DNA from: Lepidodermella squamata
Taxonomy: Eukaryota > Animalia > Gastrotricha
Direction of reading: 5' to 3'
NCBI GenBank assembly: GCA_047495785.1
Contig: JBLDXI010000011.1
Span: 310,001-374,000 of the forward strand
Length of the DNA stretch: 64,000 nt
The stretch's first letter is position 1. Each line of letters begins with the position of its first letter. The position numbers and the translations under genes are program-made. The notes beneath the pieces were generated by a model that ran no database searches, had not been told where the DNA came from, and worked only from the letters and a program-made list of their open reading frames with translations. Below are positions 3,937-63,334 of the stretch, piece after piece.

Positions 3937-3977
3937 TTTCCAGCAGTTGAATGTTGGAAAGCTCATCATCGGCCAGC

Positions 3978-3984
3978 TTTTATA
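3978..3984 (-). promoter_or_regulatory. TATA box of the Cys-rich peptide gene (also 8265-8271 in copy 2)
   Basis: gcTATAAAAg on the minus strand 42-48 nt upstream of the ATG at 3936. Confidence 0.6.
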
Positions 3985-28826: not shown

Positions 28827-31800
28827 TTAGGAGACGTTTTTCAAATATTTGATGAGTTTGTAAGCGTTAGCTTCCAACTGATTCCAATGCTGAACAGCTA
28901 TCATGTTTATTCCAGCGATCGACGCCTTCCAAACTTGAATGGATTGCCTTCTCCTTCGAGAGTTATTGACTGATATGACAAAAAGCCGCCTGCCTATACT
29001 GACTGTCAATTGTTTTAGCGAAATGAACGAAGCTTTGTCATATTGGGACGATGAAGTGATGACCACGATAACAGGCAAAGCAGCCGACCCACTAGCATCT
29101 GAAAGTTACTGAATCGCTGACATTTCGCCGAAATAAAATGCGACATATTACCCTGAGGACCGAAAGCAGAACTCCGGAATATTTGAGCCAAGCTGTTGGA
29201 TATATTGCCTCTCCCGCCGAAATACATCAGTGAATCAATCGCAGAGTCAAGACTTGTTCTGTCCTCGAAACGATCGGAAAGTTTGAACACTCCATAGCCA
29301 GTGTTTCGACCGGCGGAGCTTATTAAGCCGACCTGTAATTAATAAAATAAAGTTCATTAACAATTATGCTTCATATTTATGTCATTACCTGAATATTAGC
29401 TGGGTTAGTTTGAAAGTTGATTGCCATGTGGTCGGTCGTTAGTTTCAGGAAAGTCTTGATTGTAGTCAGTTGCCGCTTTGGAACGTTGAGGGAAGTGTCG
29501 ATAACAAAATAGACATTCAAATTTCGGTTCACGCCTAGAAAATAGGCAAGTGTTATTTCGCACTTTCGTGATAACAAACTTTGAATGATCGTCTCGGTTA
29601 TTAAAGTTAGATGTTTGTGTACAAAGCCCAGAGTTTTGATTCACTCTATAACTTGATGATAAAAAGCTTACTCTCAAGCTTGCAAGACATGTCACAGCCA
29701 TCGCCAACTAATGCATTACCGTCGTCGCACTCTTCCAAGTTTGATTTATCCAACTTTTTATCCCCACAGCCCTAATGCACGGGAAAATTCCGTTGAAAGG
29801 TTACGAGAAGTCAGAATCCAACTCACAGATTGGTATGCTGTAGTAGAGCTGAAATCAGTCACAACAGTTGTCGTGAGTAGCGATGTGGTTACTTGTGACG
29901 TTGAACTGCCTGGTGTACTCGTTGTAACTGGTGATGGACCATTCGCAGAAGTTGACGAAATTGTGTTTGTCGAAGAACTAGTTTCTGGGGAAGACGTAGC
30001 TGTTGTAGTACTTGAAGAGGCGGTCGAAACAGAGCTATTGGACGTTGACGAATCTGTTGTAGATTGACCTGAGGTTGATGTCGAAGAAATAGCTGGAGTC
30101 GAGCTTTGGAAGGAGCTAGTAGACGCTTCAGTGGTTGGGGATGGGCTTGAATCCGGAGAAGAAGTTGTTGTCTTAGGCGTTGTTGAGCTCTCAGATGTCG
30201 ATTCCAAGCTGGTAGTCGTAGTTTCCGTTGAAGGACTACTCGAAGTTGATGTTGACGGAACTGCGGTAGTTGTAGTGCTTGAAGTCGAGCTCGTGCTGGA
30301 TGTGGTTGAGCTCGCAGAAGTCGGATCCAAGCTCGTGGTTGTAGCTTCTGTGGAAGTGCTACTCGAAGTTGACGTTGGCGGAACTGTATTGCTTGAAGTC
30401 GGGCTCGTGGTAGATGTAGTTGGGCTGGTTGTAGTTGAACTAGTTGTTGAAGAGGTTGATTGGGTAGTTGTTGTAGGGCTGGTTGAGCTTGTTGTAGTTG
30501 TAGGTGTCGTTACTGTGGAGCTTGAGCTCGATGTTGAAGTGGCTGATGCTGGCGTTGTTGGAGGCGATGAAGATAGGAACCATACGTGGAACCTCGTCAG
30601 TCGAACTATGACATTGTAGTTATCAGCCGCCATCAATCTGAACATATTGGTGTAAGTTGGCATGAACCCGGACATGTTGAAAGCAGCAACATTTGACAGG
30701 ACAATTGTTGGATTACTGCCAGTTGAAGATGCCAACGCGACCTTGGGAAATCAAATTTGGCGTATTGAAGCTAAATAAGAACCGAGTGTTTGATAAAGCC
30801 CAACTGCCGCAGGTCTCTCTATTACTTTAGTCCCAAAAGTTGGGCTGGTTGTAATTTTTGAAATTTTGGAAGAAAATTAAACGCATTTTTTGAATGGAGC
30901 TCACTGAGAAAATCTACCATCCCGTATCCATTATTTAATCGAAGAAATTAAAAGTATACCTTAGAAAACTCTGAGCCCCGATGAAAACGTTTTCGGTAAT
31001 TTTTAGTTTTTACCTGCGTAGATGAAATTTCTTAGGATTTTTCAAATATCATACTTTATAACTATTTAAATGGCAATTTGGGTTATTCTACATTTTTCCT
31101 GGCCATAAGATGGGATTTCACCTCTCTGTAGAGTTTCTGTTTCTTTTCCCCGTATTTTCTTTGTTTGCGTTAATTATGGAGAAAAAATGCTAAGTTTGGG
31201 CTAACTATAACAAGCCTAACACGGAGTTTTTTTTAAGGGGAGGACATGGTTGACAATGTCAACACCAAAGCGGGTCAATGTCAACACCAAAAATATTTGC
31301 ATCACCCGGGCCAGACAGCAAAATGAGAATTTATCCCACTGTTTTCTTAATTTTTAGAGGTTTGAGAGCGTGTTCCAGTTGGAAATCTTCAAAGTTTTCT
31401 CGCTTCGCTCGGTTATTAGTGGAGTTTGGCGAATACAGGAAATAAAATTTCCATCCCTGGCAGTACGGTATCCAAGATCGCACCCTGCGGCCGAATTTGA
31501 GAGAGAATTGAACCGCCTTAGAATAACCCTTTTGATTTAAGCTCTTATTCCTGAAAAATGTCCACCGAAATAAAAAACAACAAGATTTCTAAGATTAATT
31601 ATGTGTGAAATTTACTATTTTCTTACGTTTTCTCACGGGTAATATCGTGCAAGTCGCTAGAGTGCCTCGCGGAGAGATTTGTCATCATGACGCGATAAAC
31701 ATCCTATTTTTAGACTACTTTCAGCCAAAACTACGTGAAAAAACCGATAGCTTAAGCTCGCAAGTGTACACTTATCAAATAATTGCTCACTATTAACAGA

Positions 31801-33195
31801 ATCGAAGAGATGACAAATGAGGGTATCGCGAGCGAGCGTAGCGAGCGAGCGAACGATTTTTTATCCATTTCTTCATGTCAACACCAAATAACATAAAGTC
31901 AACACCACTGGATTCCTCAAAAAACACACTGCCTAACAAGCCATGTAGTACGACATCCCCCAATTGTGTTCAGTCGTCTAAACAGCTATAAGTTCAGGAT
32001 GCGGTGGGTGCGGGTTGAGGGCGGTTAGTTGAACCCTTGCTTGAAGAACTTGAAACTCTAAAACCACGAATCTGAGCGAACGCACTGCATAATTTATTGC
32101 GAACCCCTCATCCGTCCCCTCTAACAGAGCACCTCGATGAGTGCGGGCGTGTTGATCCTTCCGGTTGAAGACATCGAGGCATCGATGTACGGGCGCAAAC
32201 ATCACAACCTGTCGATGCAGTCTTCAATAATCAATAAGTCTAAATTTCCCTAAAATTCTTAATATGGAAACCGAATAAAAAACTGATAGGAAACACTCTG
32301 TTTCGCAAAGGGCAAAGGTGTTCAAATTAGGGTGGGGAAAAAAATGAAAAATGGTGCTATAACCTCTTATGTTATATCGTAACCCGCAGCAATCAATGAT
32401 AGCGCTAAGAGATACAAGGGAAATGTAGCAAGATCTTACTGTGACAAAATCGTTCAGAGATTGAACAACCATGATGAAACTGCACGAGCCAGACGAGTTG
32501 AGTAAAGGTGAGCTGCCGACTGCAGACGCATTGCCGGGTAGATTGACGTAGGTGAAAGGTGCTGTAGGGTGGTAAGTGGCGTAGGTCTCGCCATTCGGCA
32601 TCAACTTCTGCCAGATCATCAGGCCTATCGGCTGCGCGTATTGAACAGGCTTGTACACTAGACTCAAAATTCTTCGTAAAGTTACAAAAAATGCATGGCG
32701 CTATGACTCACTTGTGGTAATGGTGTTAGCGATTATGAGACCGAACCAGCCGTAACTTCCATTTGTTAGATAACTCGTCTGAACATGGATCTCGGCTCGC
32801 CAGGCAGGTATTGTGTAATTTATCCTCTATTTACGCAAAAACTTGATAGGAAATTAGCATAATGTTGTCGAATCCTCACTGCAGTGGATCTGATGCTGCC
32901 TATGCTCTCGTTAAGGGCACCACTAGCTAATTGAATGTAGCTCCCAAAATCTCGAGCTGCATTCCCGAACGAGAAATTACTTGATGGAATACTGAGGTTG
33001 ACTCTGTCAATCGAATATTCTGGCATATAGGTGGCGTTAGCAGTCAAATAAGGCAGTGGGAGGATGCCTATCGAAGGCTCAGGTAGTTGCGCAAGAATAG
33101 CTACAGGTTAATTCTTTAAGAAACCAAAATTCTATCTCAATAATCTTACCTGGGACATACAGCAAAATTAGGTAGCAGATTGAGATTAGAGCCAT
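28827..33195 (-). CDS. Gene K: secreted lectin-like + Ser/Thr stalk + CGD..EECDDGN..DGC..C repeat + VWA protein; exons 33195-33150, 33100-32880, 32826-32712, 32657-32440, 30741-29827, 29771-29672, 29534-29389, 29332-29152, 29098-28827
   Basis: All junctions are GT-AG and join in frame. VWA-like NVYFVIDTS...QVGLIS...YFGGRGN...VIVVITS; no TM segment. Exon structure mirrors gene J. Confidence 0.8.
31230..31920. repeat. Repetitive insertion inside the long intron of gene K
   Basis: gtcaacacca repeated twice near each end (31258, 31279, 31878, 31898), plus cgcttcgctcg and gcgagcgagcgtagcgagcgagcg motifs. Confidence 0.4.
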
Positions 33196-34585
33196 TGTCG
33201 ATTAAACGGTCCAGCCGAAATCAAAATGTAATTGCTCGCACTGAATCATTGATTTTGGCAGTTTTTCGAAGGGCGGTGCATACAAAAAACATGTTTATCC
33301 CCCACAATTGCTACTGCGTATATAAACAACTGCAAGCGAGAAGACAATTTTATCGTGTTGATTGTTGATGTCTGGTTTTGAGTAAACTACGCAGATTCCA
33401 GGTTAGCAGCAACAACTGGAGAAATAACACAATTTAAGCATGTTTTTAGATCGAAATAGTAAAAGACAGCGGACGTAAACTCTGAAACTATTTTTCAGCT
33501 GTTGCCCATTTTAATTTCAGAAATTAGCCAAAAGATAGAAAAACACATTTGGCGCATGAAATAGCTCCGTGAAGCTATCAAGGCATACCCAAAAAGCTTT
33601 CATTTCTGCATGACGGAGCATTTGCTGGCCTGAATCATGGGTCTCCTTCGATCGATCTGCATCAATCATTGCGTCACATTTGAGAAATCAATGAATAAAA
33701 CAAATGGGTTAAATACTAAATCATACTTAATCATGGGGAATTATGTTTCTTGTTTCATAAGGGTTCAAACTTTAAAGATTCAGATGACGCAACCGTCCTA
33801 GAGGATGTACACATGTACTAGCTGGGACAAGGCGCCCAACTTTTCAAACTTGTTCCTGTCAATTTCACACACCAGAATGCGTAAGGGAATTGTCCGACAT
33901 TTTGTGGTGTAGAAACCGCCTGAATAGTCAAAACTACCTCAAAACTAATATTTGACAGCAGTTTCAGAGGTTTTCGAAAGCCCTGATCACGATTCACGAT
34001 TTCGAAATCCGTTTTTCTTTATCTATCACCGTTAAGGCTGTACGAAAACTGGCCGAAATCATCCTATCTGCCAAGCTGATTTCAGCCGATTTTTCGAGCT
34101 CCCTAATTTTTGTGTCAGGTGCCTTCAGTTTTGGAATTATAGATTCTAAATTACTCCCACGAATGTCCTTAAGATTCTCCCACACTTATATCACCGAAAG
34201 AATTCAGTTTAAAAAAGTTTCAGAGGCTCAGCATTCAGATCAGAATTCAGCTTTTCCAGTTTTTGCAGCAATCACGCACTCCGCCTGTATAAGTCTGGGC
34301 GGATAGGACGAATTCAGCCGGTTTGATTGAATTTCAATAGAGACGTCAATTTTACTTTCCAACTCAAAATATTTCTCAAAAGGGCGATCAAGAATTCATC
34401 AAATTCAATTTTCTGTGATTTTTAAAGTCGAAATCGTCCTTCCCGCCGTGAAAGGGTTAATAATCGAGGCCGCCATTCATAGTCTCGCCAAGATTATTCA
34501 ACGCCGGATTTGGAAAATGATAAGGCTTTATCGCCAATTTTTTGCACCCGTTACTACAGAAAATGACATCCGAAGCTTTACGATC

Positions 34586-34643
34586 TGGCGATAAGGCGAT
34601 TATTCATTGATATGATTAACATCGTATAGGTATAAAAGACCGC
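34586..34643 (+). promoter_or_regulatory. Conserved GATA-site + TATA promoter module of the PPxY 8-TM genes (also ~38843-38902, ~44441-44492, and minus strand ~26805-26837)
   Basis: Consensus tgg(c/t)GATAAggc..ttattcattgatatg....ggTATAAAAgac(c/t)gc upstream of P3, P4 and P5; the GATA/ttattcattgatatg block is also upstream of P2. Confidence 0.7.
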
Positions 34644-34704
34644 AGAGTCTGCACGCAAATTAAACTATAACGGATTCTCTTCTCTCGCTGATATTAATTA
34701 AAGA

Positions 34705-35898
34705 ATGGACCAATACAAAACACCCTTGTGGCCACCTGAGTACGAAGAGCCGTCGGTCAAGTACTCGGAAACACCGCCAAGCTATTCAATGTCTGTAACT
34801 TCCAGTCCGCAAAGTCCAGTGCCGCAGCAAGTGACTCCATCGTATCGCCAGCCTGGTCCGGTTACTTCAACTTCAACTGTCCAAGCCAGCTCTCGAAATC
34901 GTGTTCCGGAAGCTTTGGAACTTGTCGTCTTCCCGAAAAAGCCAGCAGTTTGGGTGTTCAAAACTCTGGGCGTACTAGCATCTCTCGCTCAGGTCGGCCT
35001 AATTTTAGCCTACTCTTTCGACTGGTTCGTCGGGTCAGATTGTTTGACAACGTGCGACAAGAAGTATAATAAGTATAACTCCTCGGCTACGTCCGATTAC
35101 GTCTTCTGCGTTCGCCAATGCTACACCGACAACATCCTGCTGGTCATGCCGATCAATGACTACATGATCCATTTAGCATTTTCAATCTACCTGCTGCCAG
35201 TATGGGTTACAACGTCGACATCGCTGTTCAGCTGGCTCAAAGCGTTGTACTGCATTGACGCAATTGCAATTATGGCGGGTTACATTACTTACGGCGCTCA
35301 ATTGGCGTACTCGGGCGATAGCCCTCTTTCCATTTTGCAAACGATGAATTTCGTCTTTCCGCCAATCGCATTTTTGTCAACCTTTGTCCTGGGCTGGCTT
35401 CAAAACTGGAAATATCCCGCCCATCAGGAGCAAAATGTAGGCGTTAACGAAAGAGGTATCATCAAACACTCGTGCTTTTTCATGGCTCTACTGATCATGC
35501 TATTCATTTCAAACCGCGTGTTTTTCTATGATATTTACAATTACGATTCCGATATCATTCGAGGCTTTTTGAAGGACACGCATCCAGCTGAAGCTCGCTT
35601 GAACATAGCGCAAAAAGCTTCCTACGTTCCCAGCATTCTTCTACCGATTTTGGCGCTTTACATGATTATATTCACCCTTGGCATGCCCGGATTAAAGCAA
35701 TATTTAACGGTTTCTGAATTTGTGCAGCAGTTTGCTAGCCAGTTTGTTTCATCTACGCTTGCCTTTGGCGCTGCTGGTGTGGCTTGGGGATTTTGCGATC
35801 GCTCATTCTATTACATTGAACCCGTTGGTTGTACAGGTTTAGCCCTGCTTTCTTTTACTGATGTTGGGTCATCTTATCTAGTTCCGGGTCGTTCCTAA
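34705..35898 (+). CDS. PPxY 8-TM family member P3 (397 aa)
   Basis: WPPEY...PPSY, Cys-rich loop, FYYIEP motif; intact ORF. Confidence 0.85.
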   Translation: MDQYKTPLWPPEYEEPSVKYSETPPSYSMSVTSSPQSPVPQQVTPSYRQPGPVTSTSTVQASSRNRVPEALELVVFPKKPAVWVFKTLGVLASLAQVGLILAYSFDWFVGSDCLTTCDKKYNKYNSSATSDYVFCVRQCYTDNILLVMPINDYMIHLAFSIYLLPVWVTTSTSLFSWLKALYCIDAIAIMAGYITYGAQLAYSGDSPLSILQTMNFVFPPIAFLSTFVLGWLQNWKYPAHQEQNVGVNERGIIKHSCFFMALLIMLFISNRVFFYDIYNYDSDIIRGFLKDTHPAEARLNIAQKASYVPSILLPILALYMIIFTLGMPGLKQYLTVSEFVQQFASQFVSSTLAFGAAGVAWGFCDRSFYYIEPVGCTGLALLSFTDVGSSYLVPGRS

Positions 35899-35974
35899 GT
35901 TCTAATTTCTAAGTGAATGAACATTTTTAATTACTAAAAGATGATAGATCGATATTTTGATGTTTTATTGGACT

Positions 35975-36248
35975 GGCTTCCCAGCATTCTTCTACCGCGA
36001 TTTTGGCGCTTTTCATGATTTCCATCATCCACGCCATGCCCACATTAAAGCATTTTAGTTCGTGTTCTGAATTTCGGCAGCATTTTGCTAGCCTGTTTAT
36101 TTCAACTTTGCTTCCTGTTGGCGCTGCTGTTGTGGCTTGGGGATTTTAACGGTCATTCTACTATATTGAACCTATTGCCTGTACAGGTTTGGCCATCCTT
36201 ATGTTGGCCGATCTTTTTTTATATTATCTAGTTCCGCATCGCTTCTGA
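35975..36248 (+). pseudogene. Degenerate tandem duplicate of the 3' end of a PPxY 8-TM gene
   Basis: cttcccagcattcttctaccg...ttctactatattgaacc...tgtacaggttt repeats 35625-35900 with indels and stops. Confidence 0.7.
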
Positions 36249-36334
36249 GTTTTGAGTGATTGAACAATTTTAATTAGTAAACAAATAATAGATCGATATT
36301 TTGATGTTTTAATGAGTCCTATTCCGATGATCGA

Positions 36335-36895
36335 TAAACATAGCCATTCAAACACCACCGAATTGTCATAAATTCAGCAAAATGAGATCACACAGCTGTC
36401 AAGTCAATCGCGAGCACAAAAGCGATCAGGTCTAAGGCTCGGATAATTCTCGTATTAGAAGCAATACTAACTTCAATGACCTAAAACAAGGTAAGTTTAC
36501 CGAGAAACAGGCGAGCATTTCATAATAGACGATATTATCAGTAAGTCCAGTTTTTGCAAATAATTCACCATCAAAAAGGCTTGAGATAAGGAAATTTGAG
36601 AGAGACAGCTTATTAACGCGTGCGAAACTTGACAAGCCTGTCGTTAACAGTTACCAGCGAGGATCGCGTCCTTCCAACCGAGGTCTCAGCCTTCATTCTC
36701 CCCACGTGTTCCCATTCCCCATTCCCCGAACCTGATATAAAAAGACCGAAAAGACCTGATACAGAACTACAGGAAAAGCTTCTGGTTGCTCAATTACGAA
36801 GGTCTAATCACACATTTGAACGTTAGAGGTAAATTCTCGAAGGTCATGGTTACAGCCGCTTCGGAATGTCCCGAGTCGGCTCCAATCGAAGTAAA
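36335..36895 (-). pseudogene. Decayed Cys-loop channel fragment closest to gene D
   Basis: Minus strand YFDWSRLGTFRSGCNHDLREFTSNVQMCD*TFVIEQP...SSFARV...YEMLACF with stops and deletions. Confidence 0.75.
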
Positions 36896-37041
36896 TATCC
36901 CGCTGAGATATGCTCTGATAGTTGTCTAGTTGTTTTTCAACATCAGATATCATGCAAGCTTGCGCGAGCCCCGCAAGCCCAGTGAGTTTAGCTATTTTTC
37001 AATTCGATACTCTTTCTCACGTGTGAATTTCCATTTTCCAG

Positions 37042-37653
37042 CCTTCCTACAAGTTGTGTGAAATAACCAAGACACAGGGCACGGGCACGACAGTAAGCAA
37101 TGTTAAACTTTGCACCGCAAATGCTGGGGAGTGCAATTCTGTTCTCAAAGTGGGAACCACGGTAAGAGCTAACTGGTGTATTTACCAGTATTTAACAACT
37201 GCAATCTTCCCAGCCAACTTCTGCCGCGGTAAAATCTTTCCCCTCATTCACCGAGTGTTGTGATCCTGCAAGAGGAACATTTCCCATTCTCTACAATATC
37301 GTTCCTGGCACTCCTCCTGTATTGGCGTGCATTTCAAGTGCCGGCCAGGCATATCCATACAGAATATGGGCTGCAAACGATGATGGTACCCTAGGGCATT
37401 TTGTTTCCGATTCCCTCTAACCGCGCCATTCGACAAAAACGTCGCCGTTGCCAATACCTTGGTAATACTTTGCCTGATACAACTGTTTCATGCTGAGTTA
37501 GTTTCTCGCTTTCAGGATTCCAAACCTGCGGGGAGGTATTTCGCTGCTACTTTCCAAGCATGCTGCCAGCTTATGGCACCGGCACTTGAGGCATTCGCTT
37601 CCAATGGCAACGCCTATGGTGTGTCTGGTTTTGAAGTTTGCGGTCTTGACTGA
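37042..37653 (+). pseudogene. F.ACC-motif family paralog (3 exons visible) with a 1-nt frameshift near 37390
   Basis: SFPSFTECCDPARG...FCFRFPLT...|DSKP...TFQACC...AYGVSGFEVCGLD*. Confidence 0.6.
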
Positions 37654-38404: not shown

Positions 38405-38612
38405 CACTAAGAAAAAACTAGGAATAATAGCTTAGTTTAATTCGGGAGCAAAATATGTGTCGTCAATTTACATGCAAAAACTTGGCTCTTGGAGGGACAC
38501 AGGAGGGCTAATAGGCTGTTATTAGCTAATTGGATATATTTTCACTGTCACACAATGAACGTTTCGGCTAATGAGCTCAAATGTCAAAGTTTTGCCTAGT
38601 TTTTTCCTAGTG
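38405..38612. mobile_element. ~210-bp MITE with CACTA-type termini
   Basis: cactaagaaaaaactagg at the left and cctagttttttcctagtg at the right (17/18 inverted match). Confidence 0.6.
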
Positions 38613-38960
38613 AAGTTTGAACACATTTTCGCTATGGTTCATACGAACTTTATATTCTATCACGTCGACACTGTAGCTTCATGTCCTCTTAATTGTTTTT
38701 AATTATTTCACACTTTTACATTAATAGTGTCCCCAAGTTGCTAACACGCCGGATAACAAACAGGATAAGACACCGTTTCTGTATCAGCAATTTTATTAGC
38801 AATTTTTTGTACCCGTATTGAAACAGGATACCCTATTAACGGTCTGGTGATAAGGCGGTTATTCATTGATATGTTCAGGACCGTTGGTATAAAAGACCGC
38901 GGTTTCCCCACGCATATTAAACTATCACAGCTTTGTCCTTTTTCGCAGGTTTATAATCAA

Positions 38961-40181
38961 ATGGAAAAAGCCGATCAATCCACATGGCCACCAAATTATG
39001 TTGAGCCGTCGGCTACGTACACGGAACCGCCGCCAAGCTATTCCCTGTCTGTAATTCCAAGCCCGAGACCACAACAAGTGACCGCATATTATCGGCAGCC
39101 CATGCCGGTAACCACAGCTCCATCAATCCAACCTAATGCGACGAGCCGAACCAGGTCTGAAAATCCGGTTACCGAAGATTCGGAGCTTATCGTCTTCCCG
39201 AAAAAGCCAGCAGTTTGGGTGTTCAAAACTCTGGGCGTACTAGCATCTCTCGCTCAGGTCGGCCTAATTTTCGCCTATTCCTTAGACTGGTTTATTGGGT
39301 CAGACTGCATGAAAGCATGCGATCGGAGTGTCAACTCCACATTTAGGTTCGATTACGTCTTCTCCATTCAACAATGCTACTACGACACCATTCTGCTCTT
39401 CCTGCCGATAAATGGCTACGTCATCCAATTGGCATTTTCAATCTACCTGCTACCATTATGGGTTACAAAGTCGAAACAGCAGTTCACCTCGCTCAAAGCA
39501 CTGTACTGCATTGACGCAATTGCAATTATGGCGGGTTACATGACATACGGCATTCAATTGTCGTACTCGGGCGATAGCGATTTTTCGACTTTGCAAACGA
39601 TGAATCTAGTCTTTCCTCCTATTGCGTTTTTATCAACTTTTGTTCTGGGCTGGCTACAAAATTGGAATTTTCACGCCAATCCGGAGCAAATTGACGGCGA
39701 TAAGCTGCCAGTGTATCGCGAGGGAATTTCGGGAAATTTCGGCCACACAATGAAAAGCTCTCATTTCTTCATGGCTTTACTGATCATGATATTCATCTCC
39801 AACCGCGTGTTCTTCTATGATGTGTACAATTATGATTCCGATATAATTCTTAGCTTTTTGAAGGCCGGGAATCCAGGTGAAGGTCGATTAGAGATAGTTC
39901 AAGAAGTGTCATTCCTTCCCAGCATTCTTCTACCGATTTTGGCGCTTTTCTTGATTTTCGTCGCCCATGCCATGCGCACATTGGAGCATTACAAATCGTC
40001 TTTTGAAGCTGGGCAGCATTTGACGAACATGGTTGTTTCAGCTTTGCTTGTTGTTGGCGCGGCCAGTGTGGCTTGGGTGTTTTCTGATCTGTCATTCTAT
40101 TATATCGAACCCATTGGCTGTACAGGTTTAGCACTCTTTTTTATTGCTGATTTAATTCTGCATCGCTTCAACGTTGAATGA
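38961..40181 (+). CDS. PPxY 8-TM family member P4
   Basis: ATG at 38961 downstream of the TATA module; WPPNY...PPPSY; intact. Confidence 0.85.
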   Translation: MEKADQSTWPPNYVEPSATYTEPPPSYSLSVIPSPRPQQVTAYYRQPMPVTTAPSIQPNATSRTRSENPVTEDSELIVFPKKPAVWVFKTLGVLASLAQVGLIFAYSLDWFIGSDCMKACDRSVNSTFRFDYVFSIQQCYYDTILLFLPINGYVIQLAFSIYLLPLWVTKSKQQFTSLKALYCIDAIAIMAGYMTYGIQLSYSGDSDFSTLQTMNLVFPPIAFLSTFVLGWLQNWNFHANPEQIDGDKLPVYREGISGNFGHTMKSSHFFMALLIMIFISNRVFFYDVYNYDSDIILSFLKAGNPGEGRLEIVQEVSFLPSILLPILALFLIFVAHAMRTLEHYKSSFEAGQHLTNMVVSALLVVGAASVAWVFSDLSFYYIEPIGCTGLALFFIADLILHRFNVE

Positions 40182-41873
40182 CCATTTTCAATTTTCAATA
40201 TGTAAATGAATAATAGATTGATATTTTGATGGTTAATTTGGGTAAATTCCATTCCCAAATCAGTAAGCAGCTAACGAGTTAACGGAAAAATAAATACATG
40301 GTTAGATAAATATTCAAATTGTAGATAAGTATCAGAAAGCTATCAGCTCATCCAATGGCCTCAGTTGGGGTTGACCTTTGAGCAATTTTCCACATTTTCC
40401 GGAAGCCTTCCCGGAGGCACGCAAAGTTACAGCCGAAATTTTAGGGTACGCGTTTATTTTGGTTATTCACGCGAGAAACCCATGTTCATTGGAAAGAGAA
40501 TTGTCGGAAGTTCGGTTTGGTATAAAAACCGCGGCGTTCTATAGTACGTCTCTTTCAAGCTGAATGTTTAAAGTTTAAAGTTAGGGCCGAGTTCGAATGG
40601 CTCAATGATCTCGCGGGCGGGCCACCTGTCATAGGCCAGTAATTACCCAGGTACGAAGTTTCTGAAGTCGAACAATCGAAAATTGAATCCGCAACAGGAG
40701 TCGATTGCAACCGTATTCACCTTCCAAAATCTGAAGCAGAGACCGGAACAATTATTTTAATGGCAGGTCGGGCAGAGGCTCCAGCAGCCACGGGATGTTG
40801 CAATTTTCGAAGTCGTGGAATCGAGAAAGTAAATCGTATTTTGCATTTCGCCACTCCGAATCAATGCCCGAGGAAGAAATTCCAAAACTTCACAATTCAG
40901 CCCGAACTACGCACAGAACCTGCCTTCAGGTTTCGTTGCTTTTTCGTTGTTGATTCCGTTCATTTTTCGTTGAGACCTTCGAAGATGTTTGAAAGAAGCC
41001 CATGCGCTAGAAGCCAAGCCTATAAAGATGATAATTCAATATTGACGCCGAGTGTGCATGGCCTATATCTTATATGATACCACAGATTTATGACAGGTAC
41101 TTTTTCGCACACCAAAAATAATTCTGCCACTACGCTTTTTGCCGCTGCCTGCTTGGGTTTTATTATGAAGCGTAGTTTTTTCTTATTATTTTATGTGTAT
41201 GGGATCATTAGTAGGGATATTATCAAACTTTTGCGTTGATGGTCACATGAGCCATGAATTGATGTTTTACGCCGCTTGAATGAACTTATCAGTATTGTTG
41301 GGTAGTATAATGACAATGCCTTTAGTGGCAGTGCTGCTTATTGGAACCAATGAATCCACAAGATCGCTATGGGCTCGACTATAATTTGTTGGACGACGTG
41401 ATTGGTTAGATTTTCCAGCATCTTAGCGTGTTATTTCTTGAACAGAAAGAAAATCCTGAATTTCACGGGTTCGATTCGCGGTGGCCGAGCATCATTTTTT
41501 CTGAGATTTTTTCAAGAGATAACCAATCACATTTTGTCGACGCCTGCCTGCCTCAAGAAGGTGAGCCGCGGCGCTGTAGGCAAAAAATAAAATTCAAAAC
41601 GACACTGAACTCCAGTTCGCACTTATTGGACGCAAGGAAGGATATTTAAGCACGGTAGCTTCAGCTGTTCGTCCACGTTACAACGTTGTGCCCAAGGTCG
41701 GCGTCATAAATGTAATAGCATGCCAGCTCATCTATTTTATTTTATTCATCTATTCATCAATTCTCGACCTAAGATTGCTGCAAATATGTACGTCAGTGTC
41801 TTTTAATACAGCTAGATGTTTTATTTGTTTTATTGGTTCGTAAATCTGCCGAACATTCCGGTGCCTTGTTGGT

Positions 41874-42420
41874 TTAAACACTGCAAACCTCAAAGCCAGA
41901 GGCGCCATAGGCGCTGCCGGTCGATGCGAATGAGACAGTTCCGGGAGACATAGCTAGGCAGCATGCTTGAAAACTTGAAGCGCTGTAACTAGATCCAGGT
42001 TTAAGAGCCTGAAAGCGAGACTCAATAACATGAAAGAAAATGTATCAAGGCAAAAAGCTACCAAGGTGGAAGTAACGCGAGTGAAAGCTTCAAATGGTGA
42101 GGTTAAAGGGAATCGAAAACAATATGCCGCAGGAGTCCCATCATTGTTAGCAGCCCATATTTTGAATGGCCTTGCTTCGGCCATACTCGACACACATGCC
42201 AATACAGGTGGAATGCCGGGAACGACTTCGTATAGGATGCTATCGACTCCTTTTGCAGCATCGCAGCACTCAGCGAACGACGCGAATGTTTTAACCGCGG
42301 CAGAAGATGCCTAAACAAAATACAGCTGGTTAGTACCAGGTTACACGTGCTAATTCTTACCGTGGTTCCACCGTGGTACAGAATTGTTGATGGTCGTCAC
42401 CGCGTGGCAGGCAGGCAGGC
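41874..42420 (-). pseudogene. F.ACC-motif family paralog; last two exons intact, upstream exon degraded
   Basis: TFASFAECCDAAKG...YCFRFPLTSPF...|ALKPG...FQACC...AYGASGFEVCSV*. Confidence 0.6.
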
Positions 42421-43324
42421 GTAGAGAAAATCGTGGCAAAAATTGACAAAGTTTATATATCAGCCATATGCCTAACCACCGGCGGTGGCATCGAGCAAAT
42501 GTTTATTACTTAACTTCAAGAGGCATCACAACTATATACTGCTCCAATACCCAACAGCAAGGTGCCATTGTTCAAGCTGCTGGAAACAGCAATAGGCGCG
42601 CTGATATTCAAGCTAATGATCGCATAAATATGACTGACTACACGATGTGCCGTCTCTCAATAATAGCAACACACTTGGCAGGCAGCGGCAAAAAGCGTAG
42701 TGGCAGAATTATTTTTAGTGTGCAAAAAAGCCCTGTCCTGGATCCGTGGTATCATTCAGAGCAGTCGGAATCGGCCTCTATATTGAACATATAGCTTGAC
42801 AGGCTTGGCACTACCTGCGGATGGGCTTCTTTCACAACCGCAACTTCGGCCACCTTAATGACTAATGAATCGCATCGACAGTAGTTGGCAATAATACCTA
42901 AAAGACAAGCCCCATGAGTAATACCGGCTGAACTAACCGCATTTGCAATTCCTGCTCGAAACAATACACGATTTACTTGCTCGAATGCTCGACTGGTAGC
43001 CATTTTTGGAACATGTTTTCGACTTCGAAAACATCCCGAGGAGGGGCTGCGGGGGCTTCTGCCCCGAATTGCAGGCCAGCCATGCAAATCATTTGAAAAA
43101 TTTGTTGACATCAGTCGACGCTTCAGATTTCGGAAGGTACATACGGTTGCGATCTACACCCAATAATGCCTGCAACGGCTTCAATGTTTTAACGGCGAAA
43201 CACTATAAAGCAGAGCAATTTGTTGAATATTGTTGAATAATAATATGAAAGACAAGATTAAATAATGCTATGCTATGCTATGAATGATTGATTTTGGCAG
43301 TTTTTCCAAGGGCGTGATGAAATA

Positions 43325-43500
43325 TGGGTGCGTTTCTAAACTCGTGTTTCTGATTTTTTGTTTCATAAAATCGAAAAAAACATGACATTTCTTTAAAGCC
43401 GGTGTGTTTTACACATGTTAAGAGGCGCGCGAGTTTAGTTTATTTTGCTTAAAAACAACAAGAATAAAATAAAATTCAACAGAATAAAGAAACGCACCCA
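43325..43500. mobile_element. Small MITE inserted in a duplicated copy of the gene K upstream region
   Basis: tgggtgcgtttct ... agaaacgcaccca TIRs; the flanks align with 33250-33500, where the insert is absent. Confidence 0.55.
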
Positions 43501-44554
43501 ATTTTATCCCCCACAATTGCTACTGCGAAGGTGAAATATGCCTGTAAACAACTAGAAGCGAAAAGATGCGCGTAGATTGTTGATGTCTGGTTATGAGAAA
43601 ACTATGCAGATTCCAGGTTACCAGCAATTGGAGGAATAATATTATCTGAGCATGTTTTCCTGTTCGAAATAGTAACTGACAGCGGACGTAAATTGGATCT
43701 AAACACTGAAACTATGTTTCAGCCGATGCATTATAGTCCGGATATGCAGAATCGAAGTCCAAGCTATTTATAATAAGGGGTCGCAAGGGTGAAGTGGAAA
43801 ACTTAAAACCTCCGAAAAAACCACAGGGGGCCTTTTGGTCATAAGATTAGGCCCAAAAATATCCCAAATATCCCAAAAATATCCCCTAGGTCGAGGATCC
43901 TACTTAGCGCATTGACATAAGCGCTGAAATTTACGAAACCTTGTCCGGTTCTACCCTCCAATTGCGCTATTTATTTTGCGGCCTGACTGAAACTAAAGGG
44001 GCTGGAATTGAGCTTTTCGTTATAAATCATTCGAATTTTTCTACATCACATCGACCCGGAGTGGCTTGCTTCGTCCTCTTAATATTTCACATTTACACTT
44101 TTACATTCAACATTCATGGTCTCCTTAATTTTTAACACACAGAAAAAACAAACAAGAGACACTGGTTTCTGTATTTTTGCTGGTTGAATCTTTCACGTTG
44201 AAAAAAGCATTTCTGTTATGATTCATTCGAACTGTTACTTCTTTCACTTCAACCCAGAGTAGCTTGGGTTGAATATTGGGGTCATCCTCATAATAGTTCT
44301 GTTTTTTCTTTACATTCATAGTGTCCCTAGGATGATAAAAAGCCGGATAGCGCACATGATAAGTCACTGTTTCTGTATGAAAAACTGTTTGCACCCGTAA
44401 ATGCAGAAGAAGGATACCCGACGCTCCACGGTCTTGCGATATGGCGATAATTCATTGATATGATTAACATCGCGTGGGTATAAAAGACTGCGGTGTCTGC
44501 TCGCAAAGTAAACTCACAACATCACAATATTCTTGTTTCTCACACGTTGATAAC

Positions 44555-45760
44555 ATGATGGACGAATACGTAACACCCTTGTGGCCACCCGAGTACGTTG
44601 AGCCGTCAGCTAAGCACTCGGAAGCACCGCCAAGCTATTCCTTGTCTGTAACTTCAAGCCCAAGGCCGCAACAAGTGACTCCACACTATCGCCAGCCTAA
44701 TCTTGTTTCTTCAAATGCAACCACCAGAGCGAGGCGAACAAGGTCTGAAAATCCTGTTCCGGAAGGTTCGGAACTTGTTGTCTTTCCGAAAACGCCAGCA
44801 GTTTGGGTGTTCAAAGCTCTGGGCTTGCTAGCATCTCTCGCTCAGGTCGGCCTAATTTTCGCCTATTCCTTCGACTGGTTCATCGGTTCAGATCGCTTGA
44901 CAATATGCGACAAGAAAGTTAACCCATCGGTTCCGTTCAATTACGTCTTCTGTGTTCAGCAATGCTACACTGACAACATTCTGCTGGTCGCGCCGATCAA
45001 TGGCTACATCATTCAATTAGCATTCTCAATCTACCTGCTACCATTATGGGTTACAAAGTCAAAAACGCTGTTCTCCTGGCTGAAAGCGTTGTACTGGATT
45101 AACGCAATTGCAATGATGACGGGTTACATTACTTACGGCGCTCAATTGGCGTATTCGGCCGATAGCCCGTTTTCCATTTTGCAAACGATGAATTTCGTTT
45201 TCCCGCCTATTGCGTTTTTGTCAACCTTTCTTCTGGGCTGTCTTCAAAATTCGAAATATCTCGTGAATCCGGAGCAAAATGACGGCGATAAGCTGCCAGT
45301 GTATCGCGACGGAATTTCACGAAACTTCGGCCGCGCCATCAAACACTCTGCCTTTTTCGTGGCTCTACTGGTCATGCTGTTCATTTTAAACCGCGTGTTT
45401 TTCTACGATGTGTACAAATACGATTCCGATATCATTCGAGGCTTTCTGAAGGCCGGGAATCCTAGCGAAGCTCGATTAGAGATAGTGCAAAAAGTGTCGT
45501 TCCTACCCAGCATTCTTCTGCCGATTTTGGCTCTTTTCTTGATCTTCATCACCCATGCCATGCTCATATCGGAGCACTATAAATCGTTTTCTGAAGCTAG
45601 GCAGCATTACGCGATCATGGTTGTTTCAGCTTTGCTAGTTGTCGGCGCAGCTATTCTGGCTTGGGTTTTTTCTCATCTGTCATTCTATTATATCGAACCG
45701 ATTTTATGCACAGGTTTAGCTCTTCTTTTTATTGCTGATCTAGTTCTGCATCGCTTTTGA
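44555..45760 (+). CDS. PPxY 8-TM family member P5
   Basis: WPPEY...APPSY; intact ORF; TATA module upstream. Confidence 0.85.
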   Translation: MMDEYVTPLWPPEYVEPSAKHSEAPPSYSLSVTSSPRPQQVTPHYRQPNLVSSNATTRARRTRSENPVPEGSELVVFPKTPAVWVFKALGLLASLAQVGLIFAYSFDWFIGSDRLTICDKKVNPSVPFNYVFCVQQCYTDNILLVAPINGYIIQLAFSIYLLPLWVTKSKTLFSWLKALYWINAIAMMTGYITYGAQLAYSADSPFSILQTMNFVFPPIAFLSTFLLGCLQNSKYLVNPEQNDGDKLPVYRDGISRNFGRAIKHSAFFVALLVMLFILNRVFFYDVYKYDSDIIRGFLKAGNPSEARLEIVQKVSFLPSILLPILALFLIFITHAMLISEHYKSFSEARQHYAIMVVSALLVVGAAILAWVFSHLSFYYIEPILCTGLALLFIADLVLHRF

Positions 45761-45872
45761 GTTGAATATTCATTGTGCTTATGTAAATAAATAATTGATC
45801 GATAAGTTGATGGTTTATTAGGCTACAGTCTATCCTATTCACTAGTTCGTAGAAAATTCAGCAACACAAGAG

Positions 45873-48800
45873 TTAAAGTGCGACGAGGCAAACATATAGA
45901 TGAACAGCTGTTGAGTAATCAATCGCAAGCAGAAAAGCAATCATGTCAAAGGCTCTGATAATTCTCATGTTAGCAGCAATGCCCCCGACTACCTTCAAAG
46001 ATCGAAAACGGCGTGAATTTGCTAAGAAACAGGCAAGCATTTCGTAAAAGGTAATCATAGCAGTCAGTCCAGTCTGTAGCAGCATGTAATTCACCATTCA
46101 CCATCAAAACAGCTTGAGACGTTTTAGGAATCCCAGCCAGAATTTGAGACTGGGCTACAATAATTGATAAAAGAGCCGTGACGCAGAATACCGGTCGATC
46201 TGGCATTTCCGGGTCAAGAGCGAGCGAGCCTAGGATTGTAGCCATCGTAATTGCACAAGGCATCATCAAATTGATGACGAAATGGCTGTTTTTTCGCTTG
46301 AAATGCAGCCTGACGCGTGCGAAACTCGCTGAGCCAGTGCTTATTAGTAGGGCCGCGTCGTTCCAAACGAGGCTTCAGCTTTAACTCCATCCCACATGTC
46401 ACTTTCGAGTTTCCTCAAACCTGATATAAAAACACCGCCAAAACTCGAAAAATCCCCCGGTTGCTCAATTACGAAGGTCAAATCGCACATTTCAACGTCA
46501 AAGGGAAATGCTCGGAGGTCAAGGTCACAGTCGGTTCGGAATGTCCCGAGTCGGCTCCAGTGGAAGTAAAGCGTGCAATATGGCCGCGTCGGTATGTACA
46601 CAATTTCTAGTTTATCAGAGAACTTGTTTTTTCGAAGGAACATTTCGTTAGACGAATTTGCGCTGAGAACCTGCGGCTTCCAGAACCGGGAAGATTCCCT
46701 CGGCGATAGAAGTTCCTTCATTTCGATAGAAGGAGCTGTAACTGAGCTGTGACAACTCGTAACAACCCATTTTAAGTGCAACGTAGCGATTAGAGTCAAT
46801 TGTCTTGTTTTCGCGTCAATGGCAACTAGCCGATCGATATCGAATCGCAGGTAGATCTTTGTGTAACTTTCCGGAGCTTTGTTTTGCGGAGAGAGTTGCG
46901 GGCACGTTAGCAGGTCTTCAACTGTAAGAACTGGATACATGTTTCCATCGATGATTTTCGGGATCGGGAAACCTGTTTCAGCATCGAACCCCAGCTCTTC
47001 AGCCACTTGAATATTCGCGACTGGTTTCGTAGTTTTGAATATCCCGCTAATATAAGCTCGGATAGTTGTCCAGTTTGCTGGAGCCAACCTTGTCGGTGAT
47101 GATGGATTCGATGTGATTCGCTGTCCCGTGGAGTTTGAAGCAGTTGTCGAAATAATCGTTTGGCTTACAGTCAGTGGCAAAGTACTACCTAAACTTGCCG
47201 CAAGAGTTGAGAAGCTAGTCGTGATAACAGAACTTGAAGAAATTGTTGATCCTGAGCAAGGGAACAAAAAAAACGAACATAAGCATACTTCTGAAAACGA
47301 AAATGAACCTGGAAAGGTTGTGGTAGAACTTGGGCTTGAATTCGAGTAACTTGATGTTAGAATGGCTGACGTAGATTCACCCGTGGCTAATGTCGAAGGG
47401 TCGACTGAAGTCGAACTGGCAGAAATTGTAGTAGTAGTAGTAGATGAGCTTGGAACTGAATTAAATGAAGTGGTCGCGGATTGGCTTTCGGTCGATGGCG
47501 TGGGATCGCTTGAAGTGGAGGTTTGAAAAGAGGTACTGATTATCATTGTAGTTGTTGTTGAGGACGGGCTTGAATCCGGCGTAGAAGAAGCAGTCGTAGA
47601 TTGGCTTATTACGGACGTTGTTGGGTTGATAAAAGTAGAAGGCCAAAAGGTTGAAGTCGAATCCAAACTGCTAGTTGTAGCTTCTGTTGAGGAGCTACTC
47701 GAAGTTGGTATTGAGCTTGGGTTTGGACTGGGTGAAGTTAAACTACTTGTTGTTTGGCTCGTTGTCGCAGGAGAAGTTGAACTTGTTGTAATTGTCGATG
47801 TTACTGAAGAGCTTGAGCTCGATGTTGAAGTTTCTGATGCTGGGGTTGTTGGCGGCGATGAAGATAGGAACCAGACGTGGAATCTAGTGATTCTTACGTC
47901 CACATTGTAATTATCAGCTGTCATCAATCTGAACACATTAGCGTTATTTCTCATGAACCCAGACAGATTGAACGCGGCGACGTTAGACAGGACGATGGTT
48001 GGGTCAATGCCAGCCGGAGATGCCAACGCGACCTAATTCAAAGCAGCATTTTACTATTGAGTTACTTTTTTGCATAGGTTATAGATTGGAACCTCTTCCA
48101 GAATCGAAAAGCGCTCATATTTTGGTTACTTCTTACTGAAGCCTCACTAGATCCGCGTTTGACGCTCAATCTAAATTAATATGCTAACTTCAAAAGTTAA
48201 CCTTGGATTTTGGATTACTTTGGCCTAATCATATTGATAAGTTCGTCTCCGGCACTGTCCCCCGATGGGCTTTTATTCTGACCAATAGTCGAATTCCCTC
48301 AGGGCTCGAAGCCTAACCACAGGGGGAACCCTTATGTTTTCTTTCCTGGCCCCAGCGGAAACTTGAGTGATGTAAGGGGGGACCCTTACCGATATTCCCC
48401 TTTCGGTAAAATTCCCATCTTCTACACTGAAGTTCTTACTGTGACAATATCATCCAGAGATTGAATGACCATGATGAAACTCGATGAGCCGGATGAATTG
48501 AAAAGTGGCGCACTGCCGACAGCAGACGCGTTGCCCGGTAGCAGGACATACGCGAAAGGTGTTGTGGGGTGGTAAGTGGCGTAGGTTTCGCCATCTAGCC
48601 CCAACTTCTGCCAGATCATCAGGCCAACCGGCTGCGCGTATTGAACTGGCTTGTTCACTAAAATAGCAAAGAAGGAAACACAATTGTAAAACCTTGGATG
48701 ATATAAGGCAAATTCAGAATCAGATGCAAAAAAATATTAACAATCCCACTGATCAAAATTATAGAGGAAGATCTCAAATTCGATGTATCCACATCCCACA

Positions 48801-49599
48801 TCTACTATTTTAGCGGGTTGCATTTCTAAGATCAATCTAGCTACTATAGCCCAGCATTTCCCAAACCGTATCCTATGGGGCACCCGTGTACTATGCCAAC
48901 TTTCCTGTGTCCTGTGGGCCTGAAAATGACAAAATATTAATAAGTGCGATCTACGCTATCCACACTAAAGGTCATTTTTGAACTTTGTTCTGACTCTAAT
49001 TCGGAAAATGGTCAACAAGGTATCCTTCGAGCCATTCTAATAGGAGTTGGGATCTAGCCTAATGGTATCTGAACTAAGTAATCCAAGCTCCAGGCAAATG
49101 TTAACTTGTTGTAATGGTATTTGTCATTAGAACGCCAAACCAGCCATAACTGCCATTTGTTAGATAGTTTGCCTGCACGTGTACCTCGGCTCGCCACGAA
49201 GGTTGCGTTACATTTAAGCGCTGTTGAAACAAACAAACTTTGCTTCAATTTCAAACTCTTTCAAACTACTTGCTTACAGTTGTAGATCTGACAGACCCTA
49301 TCGTACTCTCGTTCAGACTAGCGCCTGCCAGCTGAATGTAGCTACCCTTGTCCCGAGCCGCAGTTCCGAATGTGAAATTGCTCGACGGAACGGTAAAGTT
49401 CGTTCTATCGATTGAAAAATCTGGCGCGAATGTCGCGTTAGCCATCAAGTACGGCAGCGGTAGAATGCTCGTCGAAGGCTCAGGCATTTGCGCAAAAACA
49501 TCTGAGAAGATCTTACGCGATTAGTCTAAAGATAACAAAAATCAAAATCGAACCTGAGCAGCAAAGTAGAAATGTGCACCAAACTAAGAACAGCGCCAT
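45873..49599 (-). pseudogene. Gene D: lectin-like + stalk + Cys-loop channel with two frameshifts in the channel part; exons 49599-49554, 49501-49278, 49220-49106, 48657-48440, 48032-45873 (possible 57-nt in-frame intron 47308-47252)
   Basis: CDLDLRAFPFDVEMC; one base missing near 46351 and a 7-nt duplication (ATGGTGA twice) near 46095; lectin exons nearly identical to gene K. Confidence 0.8.
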
Positions 49600-63302: not shown

Positions 63303-63334
63303 ATTTTTTTCTCTGTTGATTGAAGGAAAAATAA

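Follow-up and report, generated by a model that had tools for sequence, protein, structure and literature searches.

Shuffling of exons or domains among genes that are neighbours or duplicates can create chimeric new genes, of which Drosophila jingwei and primate TRIM5-CypA are examples. In metazoan extracellular proteins, modules are shuffled according to Patthy's phase-1 rule, and molluscan AChBP and nAChR represent soluble and channel-bound versions of one binding domain. DeCLIC, a prokaryotic pentameric ligand-gated channel, carries an accessory N-terminal domain (PMC9897478).

The gene that we call D lies in a 64,000-nucleotide stretch of the genome of the gastrotrich Lepidodermella squamata (contig JBLDXI010000011.1, positions 310,001–374,000; hereafter the window, with coordinates counted from its first letter). 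Like DeCLIC, D encodes a pLGIC subunit with an extra extracellular domain, the head, N-terminal to the ligand-binding domain. D and its kin differ from DeCLIC in being intron-containing, animal-type Cys-loop subunits (C-x13-C, FPFD); moreover, their extra domain does not pack against the extracellular domain but is carried on a Ser/Thr stalk of ~250–300 residues, and no relation between it and the DeCLIC jelly-roll lobes is detectable. Like jingwei and TRIM5-CypA, D has parts with different closest paralogues, apparently joined in a tolerant linker or intron and kept afterwards under purifying selection. In D, however, both partners belong to one tandem cluster and already had head-stalk architecture, the 5' module comes with a promoter-proximal element of its own, and the product seems since to have been disabled in the sequenced genome.

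In keeping with Patthy's rule, phase-1 introns follow the signal-peptide exon (in D, K, J, B and the headless gene E) and the Cys repeat of K and J, and a candidate phase-1 intron lies in the stalk of D. Yet the piece concerned includes the signal-peptide exon and upstream DNA, which makes it a 5'-end replacement and not the insertion of a symmetric module. The likeness to AChBP and nAChR lies in the idea of a recognition domain common to a secreted protein and a channel. AChBP shares the channel's own ligand-binding domain, whereas D and K share an accessory head of unassigned fold; furthermore, 25% of head residues differ between D and K, and the copy on the channel is broken.

Gene D and its relatives in the window

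Gene D (45876–49599, minus strand), like its relatives, was modelled manually with GT-AG introns and checked by translation. Its first exon (49599–49554) encodes the signal peptide, exons 2–4 (49501–49278, 49220–49106 and 48657–48440) encode head sequence, and the last exon (48032–45876) contains the last part of the head, the Ser/Thr stalk, the Cys-loop extracellular domain and M1–M4, in three reading frames. The 3' half matches Pfam Neur_chan_LBD (PF02931; E 1.7e-8, 34.6 bits against a cutoff of 26), and its translation contains DCDLDLRAFPFDVEMC, a Cys-loop C-x13-C with an FPFD core. By sequence it is thus a Cys-loop, or pentameric ligand-gated ion channel, subunit.

A, B, K, J and psi36 are also on the minus strand. 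Genes A (14266–17318, 3 exons) and B (18757–22576, 4 exons) are intact and encode an A/B-type head, a stalk and a Cys-loop channel; the nearest solved structures to A by sequence are nAChR alpha chains in the PDB (E 1e-12). In A, B, C and E, the extracellular domain and M1–M4 share one continuous frame. Gene K (28830–33195), in nine exons, starts with a signal peptide, head and Ser/Thr stalk, followed by a single DUF4215-type Cys repeat and a VWA-like domain; as no transmembrane segment is present, the product is predicted to be secreted. Gene J (55163–57684, 8 exons) combines a divergent head, stalk, DUF4215 repeat and VWA-like domain, and its tail is a paralogue of the K tail (43% amino acid identity). 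With K exons as single queries, Pfam matched exon 7 to positions 1–33 of VWA (PF00092; E 0.0012, 19.5 bits, below the cutoff of 23.8) and no other exon; the J exon homologous to the Cys-repeat exon of K matched DUF4215 (E 5.9e-6). The metal-site motif reads DTSLN in K and DTSLR at the same position in J, and neither VWA-like domain matches the MIDAS motif D-x-S-x-S. Finally, psi36 (35977–36998) is a D-like channel remnant, 5'-truncated and with an in-frame stop, that belongs to a duplicated block (33294–36895) matching 43503–46570.

The head had been called a lectin, an assignment that we regard as unverified since the head has no detectable relatives in the searches that were run. Its exons match nothing in Pfam, and two head profiles found nothing below E=1 among PDB sequences. 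A profile of the N-terminal half gave only two weak matches among 1.84 billion representatives: a protein of 5176 residues at E 1.9e-7 and one of 726 residues at 6.6e-5. The other matches of those proteins were to unrelated, sub-threshold families, and we read both hits as spurious. A protein-atlas search gave named families at only 0.81–0.86 and, at 0.91, one unnamed cluster sharing few features; all are leads at best. AF2 modelled the largest head exon with a pLDDT of 37.5.

Gene D is a mosaic

The 5' halves of D and K are homologous. Both contain the motifs quoted in the earlier note. The matches in the family have tblastn E-values of 1e-22 to 1e-73, far beyond chance. That note had called the N-terminal exons near-identical; in fact the heads share 75.5% of amino acids and 75.7% of nucleotides, with dN 0.157 and dS 1.06. 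Introns 1–4 of the two genes coincide in position, as the note had observed, and also in phase (1, 0, 1, 0), but the positions are not specific to the pair, because J has all four and B three (A has two). Intron sequences of D and K align no better than shuffled sequence.

The resemblance extends upstream of the coding region. An element, GTGGGATATAAACATGTTTT, at 49725–49744 (minus strand), ~126 nt before the D ATG, has its counterpart, GTGGGGGATAAACATGTTTT, at 33286–33305 (minus strand), ~91 nt before the K ATG. A pattern search with this 20-nt motif found these two matches and no others in the window, where chance would give 0.03, and the D–K local alignment has z=7.3. The element resembles a TATA-type core-promoter element, and may serve as one. 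The K-type module of D (47540–49744, minus strand) comprises the upstream motif, the signal peptide, head exons 2–5 and ~100 proximal stalk codons, with blastn and local-alignment scores to K above those of shuffled controls.

The remainder of D, an A-type module of linker, Cys-loop extracellular domain and M1–M4 (45876–47040, minus strand), is 68% identical to A in nucleotides. In amino acids, the D channel is 64.8% identical to A and 57.4% to B, confirming that A is its closest relative. The head of A is far more divergent, as the earlier note had stated: it is only 26% identical to that of D and has two introns rather than four.

Separate trees of the heads and the C-terminal domains, built from the genes of this one window, are incongruent, with the D head going with K and the D channel with A. 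The channel maximum-likelihood tree groups A with D (support 97/98), and AU tests reject A+B (p=0.009) and B+D (p=0.017), p-values that are modest. The extracellular and transmembrane halves each recover A+D, with AU p-values of 0.07–0.08 for either half alone. Channel dS is saturated for A–D, A–B and B–D, as it is for K–J. The branch of the D channel measures 0.32 against 0.24 for A, a mild excess that fits selection after the fusion. The head tree, (A,B)|J|(D,K), is unrooted with a long J branch, and here the AU test rejects A+D at p~1e-79. Because head and channel have different closest paralogues and their trees disagree with statistical support, and with a changeover that lies within stalk-coding DNA, the reading of D as a chimera stands.

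The stalk join, its age and the frame disruptions

Breakpoint analysis across the stalk localized the join. Similarity of D to K is clear as far as ~47630 and marginal to ~47540, and similarity to A resumes at ~47040, which places the join somewhere in ~0.5 kb of Ser/Thr stalk. The interval 47040–47540 (minus strand) shows no detectable similarity to K, A, B or J, sliding 90-nt local alignments being at the level of codon-shuffled controls, and for that reason the join cannot be narrowed further. A candidate 57-nt phase-1 intron (GTTCAT...GCTCAG; 47252–47308, minus strand), read from the sequence, lies inside this interval. It is T-rich, it would if coding give a hydrophobic, Cys-containing stretch unlike the remaining stalk, and its size fits the 49–57-nt introns of this genome. 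The genes had been described as diverging at the end of the stalk near this intron, but similarity is lost 230–320 nt before it. Recombination in the low-complexity stalk had also been proposed. The changeover does fall within the stalk; homologous recombination, however, finds no support, since the longest exact matches between stalks of non-homologous genes are 11–16 nt, no longer than in codon-shuffled controls.

The join is old. The earlier note had taken the swap to be recent, but D–K dS is ~1, the introns of the pair are unalignable, and the event predates a block duplication with dS 0.39–0.47 (~0.4). Synonymous divergence between D and K is uneven, with pS 0.67 in the 5' exons and 0.46 in the 3' head exons (p=0.008 in a post hoc test), which hints at a second exchange, so that the history may include more than one.

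The channel half of D is no longer open. tblastn with the A channel runs through D in frames +2, +1 and +2, and the assembled sequence contains no single continuous frame for the extracellular domain and M1–M4. At 46352–46353 (minus strand), the assembled haplotype has a 1-nt deletion that causes a −1 frameshift before beta10/M1. The other haplotype carries an extra base there and reads through in frame; this deletion is heterozygous, as read contigs record the base ('put in behind 46352: A') at a depth of 68.7 out of 135.3, linked to five nearby SNPs. At 46091–46104 (minus strand), in the M2–M3 loop or start of M3, a 7-bp tandem duplication (ATGGTGA/ATGGTGA) causes a +1 frameshift. A, B, C and psi36 lack the duplication, which appears homozygous because the read contig across it (45908–46311) has 0 differences at full depth (126.6, ~2x the single-haplotype depth). 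No plausible frame-rescuing intron was found at the duplication.

The disruptions at ~46353 and 46091–46104 had been overlooked in the earlier note.

Most likely, then, D is a recently disabled gene. It might still function, if splicing removed the frame problems or if a truncated protein of head, stalk, extracellular domain, M1 and M2 sufficed. Indeed, all three frame pieces lack stops and are well conserved (63% and 52% to A), the first frameshift site is intact in one haplotype, and a 74-nt GT..AG interval could skip that shift, though with loss of the loop C region. At the 7-bp duplication, however, frame-restoring GT..AG intervals either are 28–37 nt long, below any intron modelled here, or delete M3, and neither an intron nor an insertion is present at this site in A, B, C or psi36. 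We consider a functional D improbable.

Origin and meaning of the chimera

We think it probable that D is a chimera that arose in a tandem cluster of lineage-specific extracellular genes by the old joining of a K-like 5' module to an A-like 3' module and was later disabled. The source of the 5' module would be a K-like secreted head-stalk-VWA gene, which contributed the promoter-proximal element, the signal-peptide exon, the four-intron head and ~100 Ser/Thr stalk codons. Joined within ~0.5 kb of stalk-coding DNA to an A-like channel 3' module (distal linker, extracellular domain and M1–M4), it would have displaced the A/B-type head expected for the channel lineage of D. The stalk may be a permissive, register-tolerant linker in which an illegitimate or intron-mediated join, needing no long homology, gives a viable protein. 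The fused gene would then have been under purifying selection (pairwise dN/dS of the D–K heads is ~0.15) and have been duplicated along with a neighbouring membrane-protein gene, leaving psi36. The last step in the sequenced animal would be the 7-bp duplication at M3, apparently on both haplotypes, plus the 1-nt deletion on one. Of this history, the data show the mosaic, the incongruent trees, the relative ages and the frame disruptions, whereas the K-like-to-D direction, the way the join was made and the loss of function are inferred.

The transfer could have run the other way, the D/K-type head being native to the channel lineage of D and K having taken promoter, head and proximal stalk from a D-like gene onto a J-like VWA tail. 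The head tree is unrootable and psi36, a D-like copy without any of the 5' half, is found just ~3 kb upstream of K; head-bearing channels are also abundant, and one of the many further head-bearing Cys-loop genes of the genome could be the true donor or could alter the inferred direction. We nevertheless find transfer from D to K unlikely. The D channel nests with A inside an A/B group with the other head type, so that extra head replacements would be needed; the head of J, the other VWA gene, is nearer to the D/K heads (dN 0.69–0.72) than to the A/B heads (0.92–0.96); and the block duplication behind psi36 (dS ~0.4) is younger than the D–K split (dS ~1). An explanation with no swap in D, in which gene conversion homogenized the heads of A and B and so caused the incongruence, is hardly credible. 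A and B are neighbours, and their heads (71% amino acid identity, dN 0.229) are closer than their channels (61%, dN 0.291), but synonymous sites are as saturated in the A–B heads as in the channels (pS 0.746 and 0.754), which argues against recent conversion. Moreover, the D and B heads would still be only 26–28% identical against 57% for the channels, and the D–K similarity and the common upstream motif would be left unexplained.

Very improbable, too, is a false join of K-like 5' and A-like 3' parts made by the assembly in the repetitive stalk. The stalk is of low complexity, no single record spans the D locus, and the read contigs, which are short assemblies whose reads probably come from the sample used for the assembly itself, break inside it at 47145–47174 and 47407–47436. 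These contigs nonetheless tile 46541–48058 across the stalk, overlapping by k−1 (30 nt) at diploid-level depth throughout (88–140). Both halves of D are unique, differing by ~25% from K and by ~33% from A, which speaks against a false join of those two genes. Its 3' flank is in addition duplicated elsewhere together with a D-like channel remnant.

The old chimera that we favour is less than the combinatorial system of matched soluble and channel-bound receptors once suggested for this locus. Only one swap among family members is resolvable in the window, that of D, and with the channel half of D out of frame (at M3 apparently homozygously, and by the heterozygous 1-nt deletion) this genome most likely has no working matched pair. 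A broader version strikes us as a long shot: promoter, head and stalk would be a reusable 5' cassette, repeatedly recombined onto Cys-loop channel or VWA outputs with joins tolerated anywhere in the mucin-like stalk or at phase-1 introns, and the K–C locus might yield both outputs by alternative splicing. C starts only ~385 nt past the K stop, and the phase-1 donor after the K Cys repeat is frame-compatible with an acceptor-like TTCGTCGCAG inside the signal-peptide coding region of C. If true, an animal would have a modular system of recognition receptors, and one based on a channel family whose eukaryotic members, according to the literature, never have N-terminal domains.

There is nothing unusual in one old shuffling between tandem paralogues; the greater novelty is that head-bearing eukaryotic Cys-loop channels exist at all. 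Related heads on two tail types imply an ancient association. The head-stalk add-on of these channels is a transferable module: two unrelated output domains have carried it, and at least one move between them took promoter-proximal DNA along. That a domain-swapped channel was long kept under selection suggests that the head works regardless of which channel lies behind it, in a role such as tethering, localization or capture, rather than in direct allosteric gating through a disordered stalk of ~250 residues.

The channel cluster and its head-bearing genes

This eukaryotic window has GT-AG introns of mostly 49–57 nt, and on its minus strand lies a tandem cluster of related genes, which we modelled by hand from the window sequence with predicted splicing. 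The products of genes A (17318-14266) and B (22576-18757) each comprise a signal peptide, a ~255-residue head, a stalk rich in Ser and Thr, and a full Cys-loop channel subunit. In K (33195-28830) and J (57684-55163), signal peptide, head and stalk lead through a single Cys repeat of the DUF4215 type to a VWA-like tail. The gene at issue, D (49599-45876), has a K-type head and an A-type channel half. C (28444-27305) and E (52684-51107) are channels without a head, and the more distant channels F, G and H lie on the plus strand.

In Pfam the channel parts score above threshold for Neur_chan_LBD, and A matches nAChR chains in the PDB (E 1e-12). The VWA assignment of K comes from one exon match below threshold (E 0.0012), and at the metal site K has a degenerate motif, DTSLN. 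The A channel half retrieved no homologous proteins at E<=1e-5, so that there were no database gene models or orthologues for comparison.

We could not support the designation of the head as a lectin. Its exons have no match in Pfam, profile searches of the PDB with two head segments gave nothing significant, and a profile of its N-terminal half returned only two weak matches, read as spurious, among 1.84 billion representative proteins. An atlas look-alike search gave weak leads below the reliability line: the best was an unnamed cluster (0.91) that shared few features, and the named families DUF6772, DUF6645, PelX_N, GH101_N and DUF1349 reached 0.81–0.86. The AF2 model of A exon 1, the largest head exon, was unusable (pLDDT 37.5, 8-row alignment). 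An isolated ORF (63299-63616, minus strand) codes for the final segment of a head, with ~40% identity to D and J, followed by a Ser/Thr stalk and a stop; it runs convergently towards the 3′ end of channel gene H, adjoins an H-like fragment (63648-63896), and represents either what remains of a head and stalk or a family member without a tail. The headless gene E has the layout of the head-bearing genes, with a separate signal-peptide exon (52684-52636), a phase-1 intron and coding sequence resuming from 52384; unlike E, C lacks the phase-1 intron after its signal peptide (28444-28400).

Interleaved with the channel and VWA genes is a family of multi-pass membrane proteins (~390–440 amino acids, N-terminal PPxY-like motifs, PPEY..PPSY), with copies on the minus strand at 23215-24381, 25493-26690 and 53334-54578 and on the plus strand at 34705-35898, 38847-40181 and 44474-45760. 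The one copy tested in Pfam (34705-35898) had no match. The three youngest copies differ by dS 0.39–0.47 with a high dN/dS (~0.36–0.48), and the copy at 25.5–26.7 kb runs through two overlapping frames, via a frameshift or an intron. An inverted repeat of ~510 nt (37134-37647 versus 42386-41877, 71% identity) flanks the TM38 copy and could be what is left of a transposon, or the scar of a rearrangement, inside the duplicated region. Outside this family, segmental copies at 2694-5468, 6981-9772 and, inverted, 10270-11031 are 96–98.5% identical and carry the same 90-residue ORF three times (4693-4965, 8980-9252 and 10600-10872); these duplications are far younger than everything in the channel cluster. 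At 65-1094 (minus strand) two neighbouring ORFs, read by eye in translation, resemble a retrotransposon reverse transcriptase in its C-terminal part.

Separate histories of the D head and channel

The genes of this window support the reading of D as a chimera, as the earlier note had proposed. The heads give the unrooted tree (A,B)|J|(D,K); a forced pairing of A with D is worse by 229 log-likelihood units (AU p~1e-79). By contrast, the channel tree, rooted on F, G and H, unites A and D at 97/98 with B outside, and the AU test rejects both A+B (p=0.009) and B+D (p=0.017). The same pair is recovered separately from the extracellular half (89/90) and the transmembrane half (91/92), each half alone giving an AU p of just 0.07–0.08. 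In amino acid identity the D channel is closest to A, as claimed (64.8%, versus 57.4% to B), and the head of A is indeed far more divergent, with two head introns; the D head is only 26–28% identical to the A and B heads.

The 5′ halves of D and K are homologous (exons 68–83% identical by blastn; tblastn E 1e-22 to 1e-73), and their four head introns occupy the same codon positions in the same phases (1, 0, 1, 0). The intron pattern is not a signature of this pair, however: all four introns are also present in J, three in B and two in A, which makes it a trait of the whole family that A and B have partly lost. To describe the N-terminal exons as near-identical, as was first done, overstates their similarity. 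Across 237 aligned head codons D and K share 75.5% of amino acids and 75.7% of nucleotides (dN 0.157, dS 1.06), and in the introns the alignment is no better than for shuffled sequence. The shared module starts 5′ of the coding region, since a 20-nt element, GTGGG(R)(K)ATAAACATGTTTT, lies ~91 nt before the ATG of K and ~126 nt before that of D, its only two occurrences in the window (0.03 expected).

Because the A and B heads are of one type and the D channel nests with A, the most economical reading is that in the D lineage a K-type 5′ end took the place of an A/B-type head. The same incongruence could arise if A and B had exchanged head sequence by conversion, with D unaltered. We disfavour this, as synonymous sites in the A and B heads are as saturated as those in the channels (pS 0.746 versus 0.754) and conversion leaves the similarity of D and K unexplained. 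Transfer in the opposite direction, with K taking its head from a D-like gene, is compatible with the unrooted head tree and with the many further head-bearing channels of this genome outside the window, but it needs more events than a head swap in the D lineage.

The join in the stalk and its age

We mapped the changeover by sliding 90-nt local alignments along the last exon of D against codon-shuffled controls. K scores well above the controls from 48032 to ~47630 and marginally to ~47540; from there to ~47040 nothing in K, A, B or J matches; and below ~47040 the match is to A and, less strongly, to B. The join thus falls in the stalk, resolved to ~0.5 kb only. This interval contains, as the earlier note had it, a candidate intron (47308-47252; GTTCAT...GCTCAG, 57 nt, phase 1, T-rich), but the divergence is not at the stalk's end, given that the K match has already faded by ~47630–47540. 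The candidate is of a size in line with the introns of this genome, its donor is similar to that of D intron 1 (GTTCGA), and if coding it would give a hydrophobic, Cys-containing stretch unlike the remaining stalk.

Homologous recombination between stalks, the mechanism first put forward, we rejected as unsupported, because exact matches between the stalks of non-homologous genes reach 11–16 nt at most, as in codon-shuffled controls. Instead, the stalk looks like a tolerant place in which a K-type 5′ end could have been joined to an A-type channel by an illegitimate or intron-mediated event.

The suggestion that the fusion is recent is likewise unsupported. The D–K head split (dS ~1.06, introns unalignable) is younger than the saturated channel splits among A, B and D and than the K–J split. 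A block duplication (33294-36895 matching 43503-46570) copied the 3′ part of D and the neighbouring membrane-protein gene, leaving psi36 (35977-36998, minus strand), a 5′-truncated D-like channel remnant with an in-frame stop and 69–73% DNA identity to D. The membrane-protein copies of this block differ by dS 0.39–0.47; judged by synonymous divergence, the D–K split is therefore older than the duplication, and psi36 is rejected as the source of the K head. Pairwise head dN/dS is 0.15 and the D channel branch is only mildly longer than that of A (0.32 versus 0.24), values that indicate purifying selection on the fused gene over most of its history. D–K synonymous divergence is uneven (pS 0.67 in exons 2–3 versus 0.46 in exon 4 together with the head portion of exon 5; p=0.008 in a post hoc chi-square test), a hint that a later conversion tract may have extended towards the stalk.

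The present state of D and what it means

The A channel protein matches D in three different frames. Compared with its paralogues, D lacks 1 nt at ~46353, which causes the first shift; the second comes from a tandem duplication of 7 bp (ATGGTGA/ATGGTGA, 46104-46091) where M3 begins, and this duplication is missing from A, B, C and psi36. Of two sequencing runs, X2 has none of the window and X1, used as assembled read contigs, has the D locus at a single-haplotype depth of ~65; the depth of X1 is even across exons, introns and flank, which points to genomic DNA. Across 46312-46390 X1 holds an alternative allele (depth 68.7 of 135.3) that differs by five SNPs and by one additional base behind 46352; read by hand, this allele restores the frame with the spacing of A. 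The contig over the duplication (45908-46311) has no mismatch to the window at a depth of 126.6 and no listed alternative, so the duplication appears homozygous. A rescuing intron was rejected, the frame-restoring GT..AG intervals all being 28–37 nt or removing M3. The channel half is thus most likely disabled, and recently so, as all three frame pieces remain free of stops and conserved.

The same contigs give no sign that D is a misassembly: they tile 46541-48058 through the stalk and both halves are unique sequence, although these are separate contigs, none spanning the gene, and X1 may be the assembly's own sample. D intron 4 (48059-48500) contains a high-copy repeat (read-contig depth ~1000–1800 versus ~100 elsewhere), of which one haplotype skips 246 nt (48059-48304); it looks like a polymorphic transposon-like insertion.

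With its channel half out of frame and the duplication apparently homozygous, D does not fit the working combinatorial system of soluble and channel-bound receptors envisaged in the earlier note. Speculatively, K exons might splice into C, which starts ~385 nt downstream of K: the phase-1 donor after the Cys repeat of K is frame-compatible with an acceptor-like TTCGTCGCAG in the signal-peptide codons of C.

We found no description in the literature of a eukaryotic pLGIC carrying a lectin or mucin domain at its N terminus, and N-terminal domains of pLGICs have been stated to be unseen in all eukaryotic homologues (PMC9897478). The cluster, by contrast, holds eukaryotic Cys-loop genes with an N-terminal head, an unusual architecture. 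The origin of D itself is ordinary domain or exon shuffling giving a chimeric gene in a tandem cluster: a known process, in a new instance.
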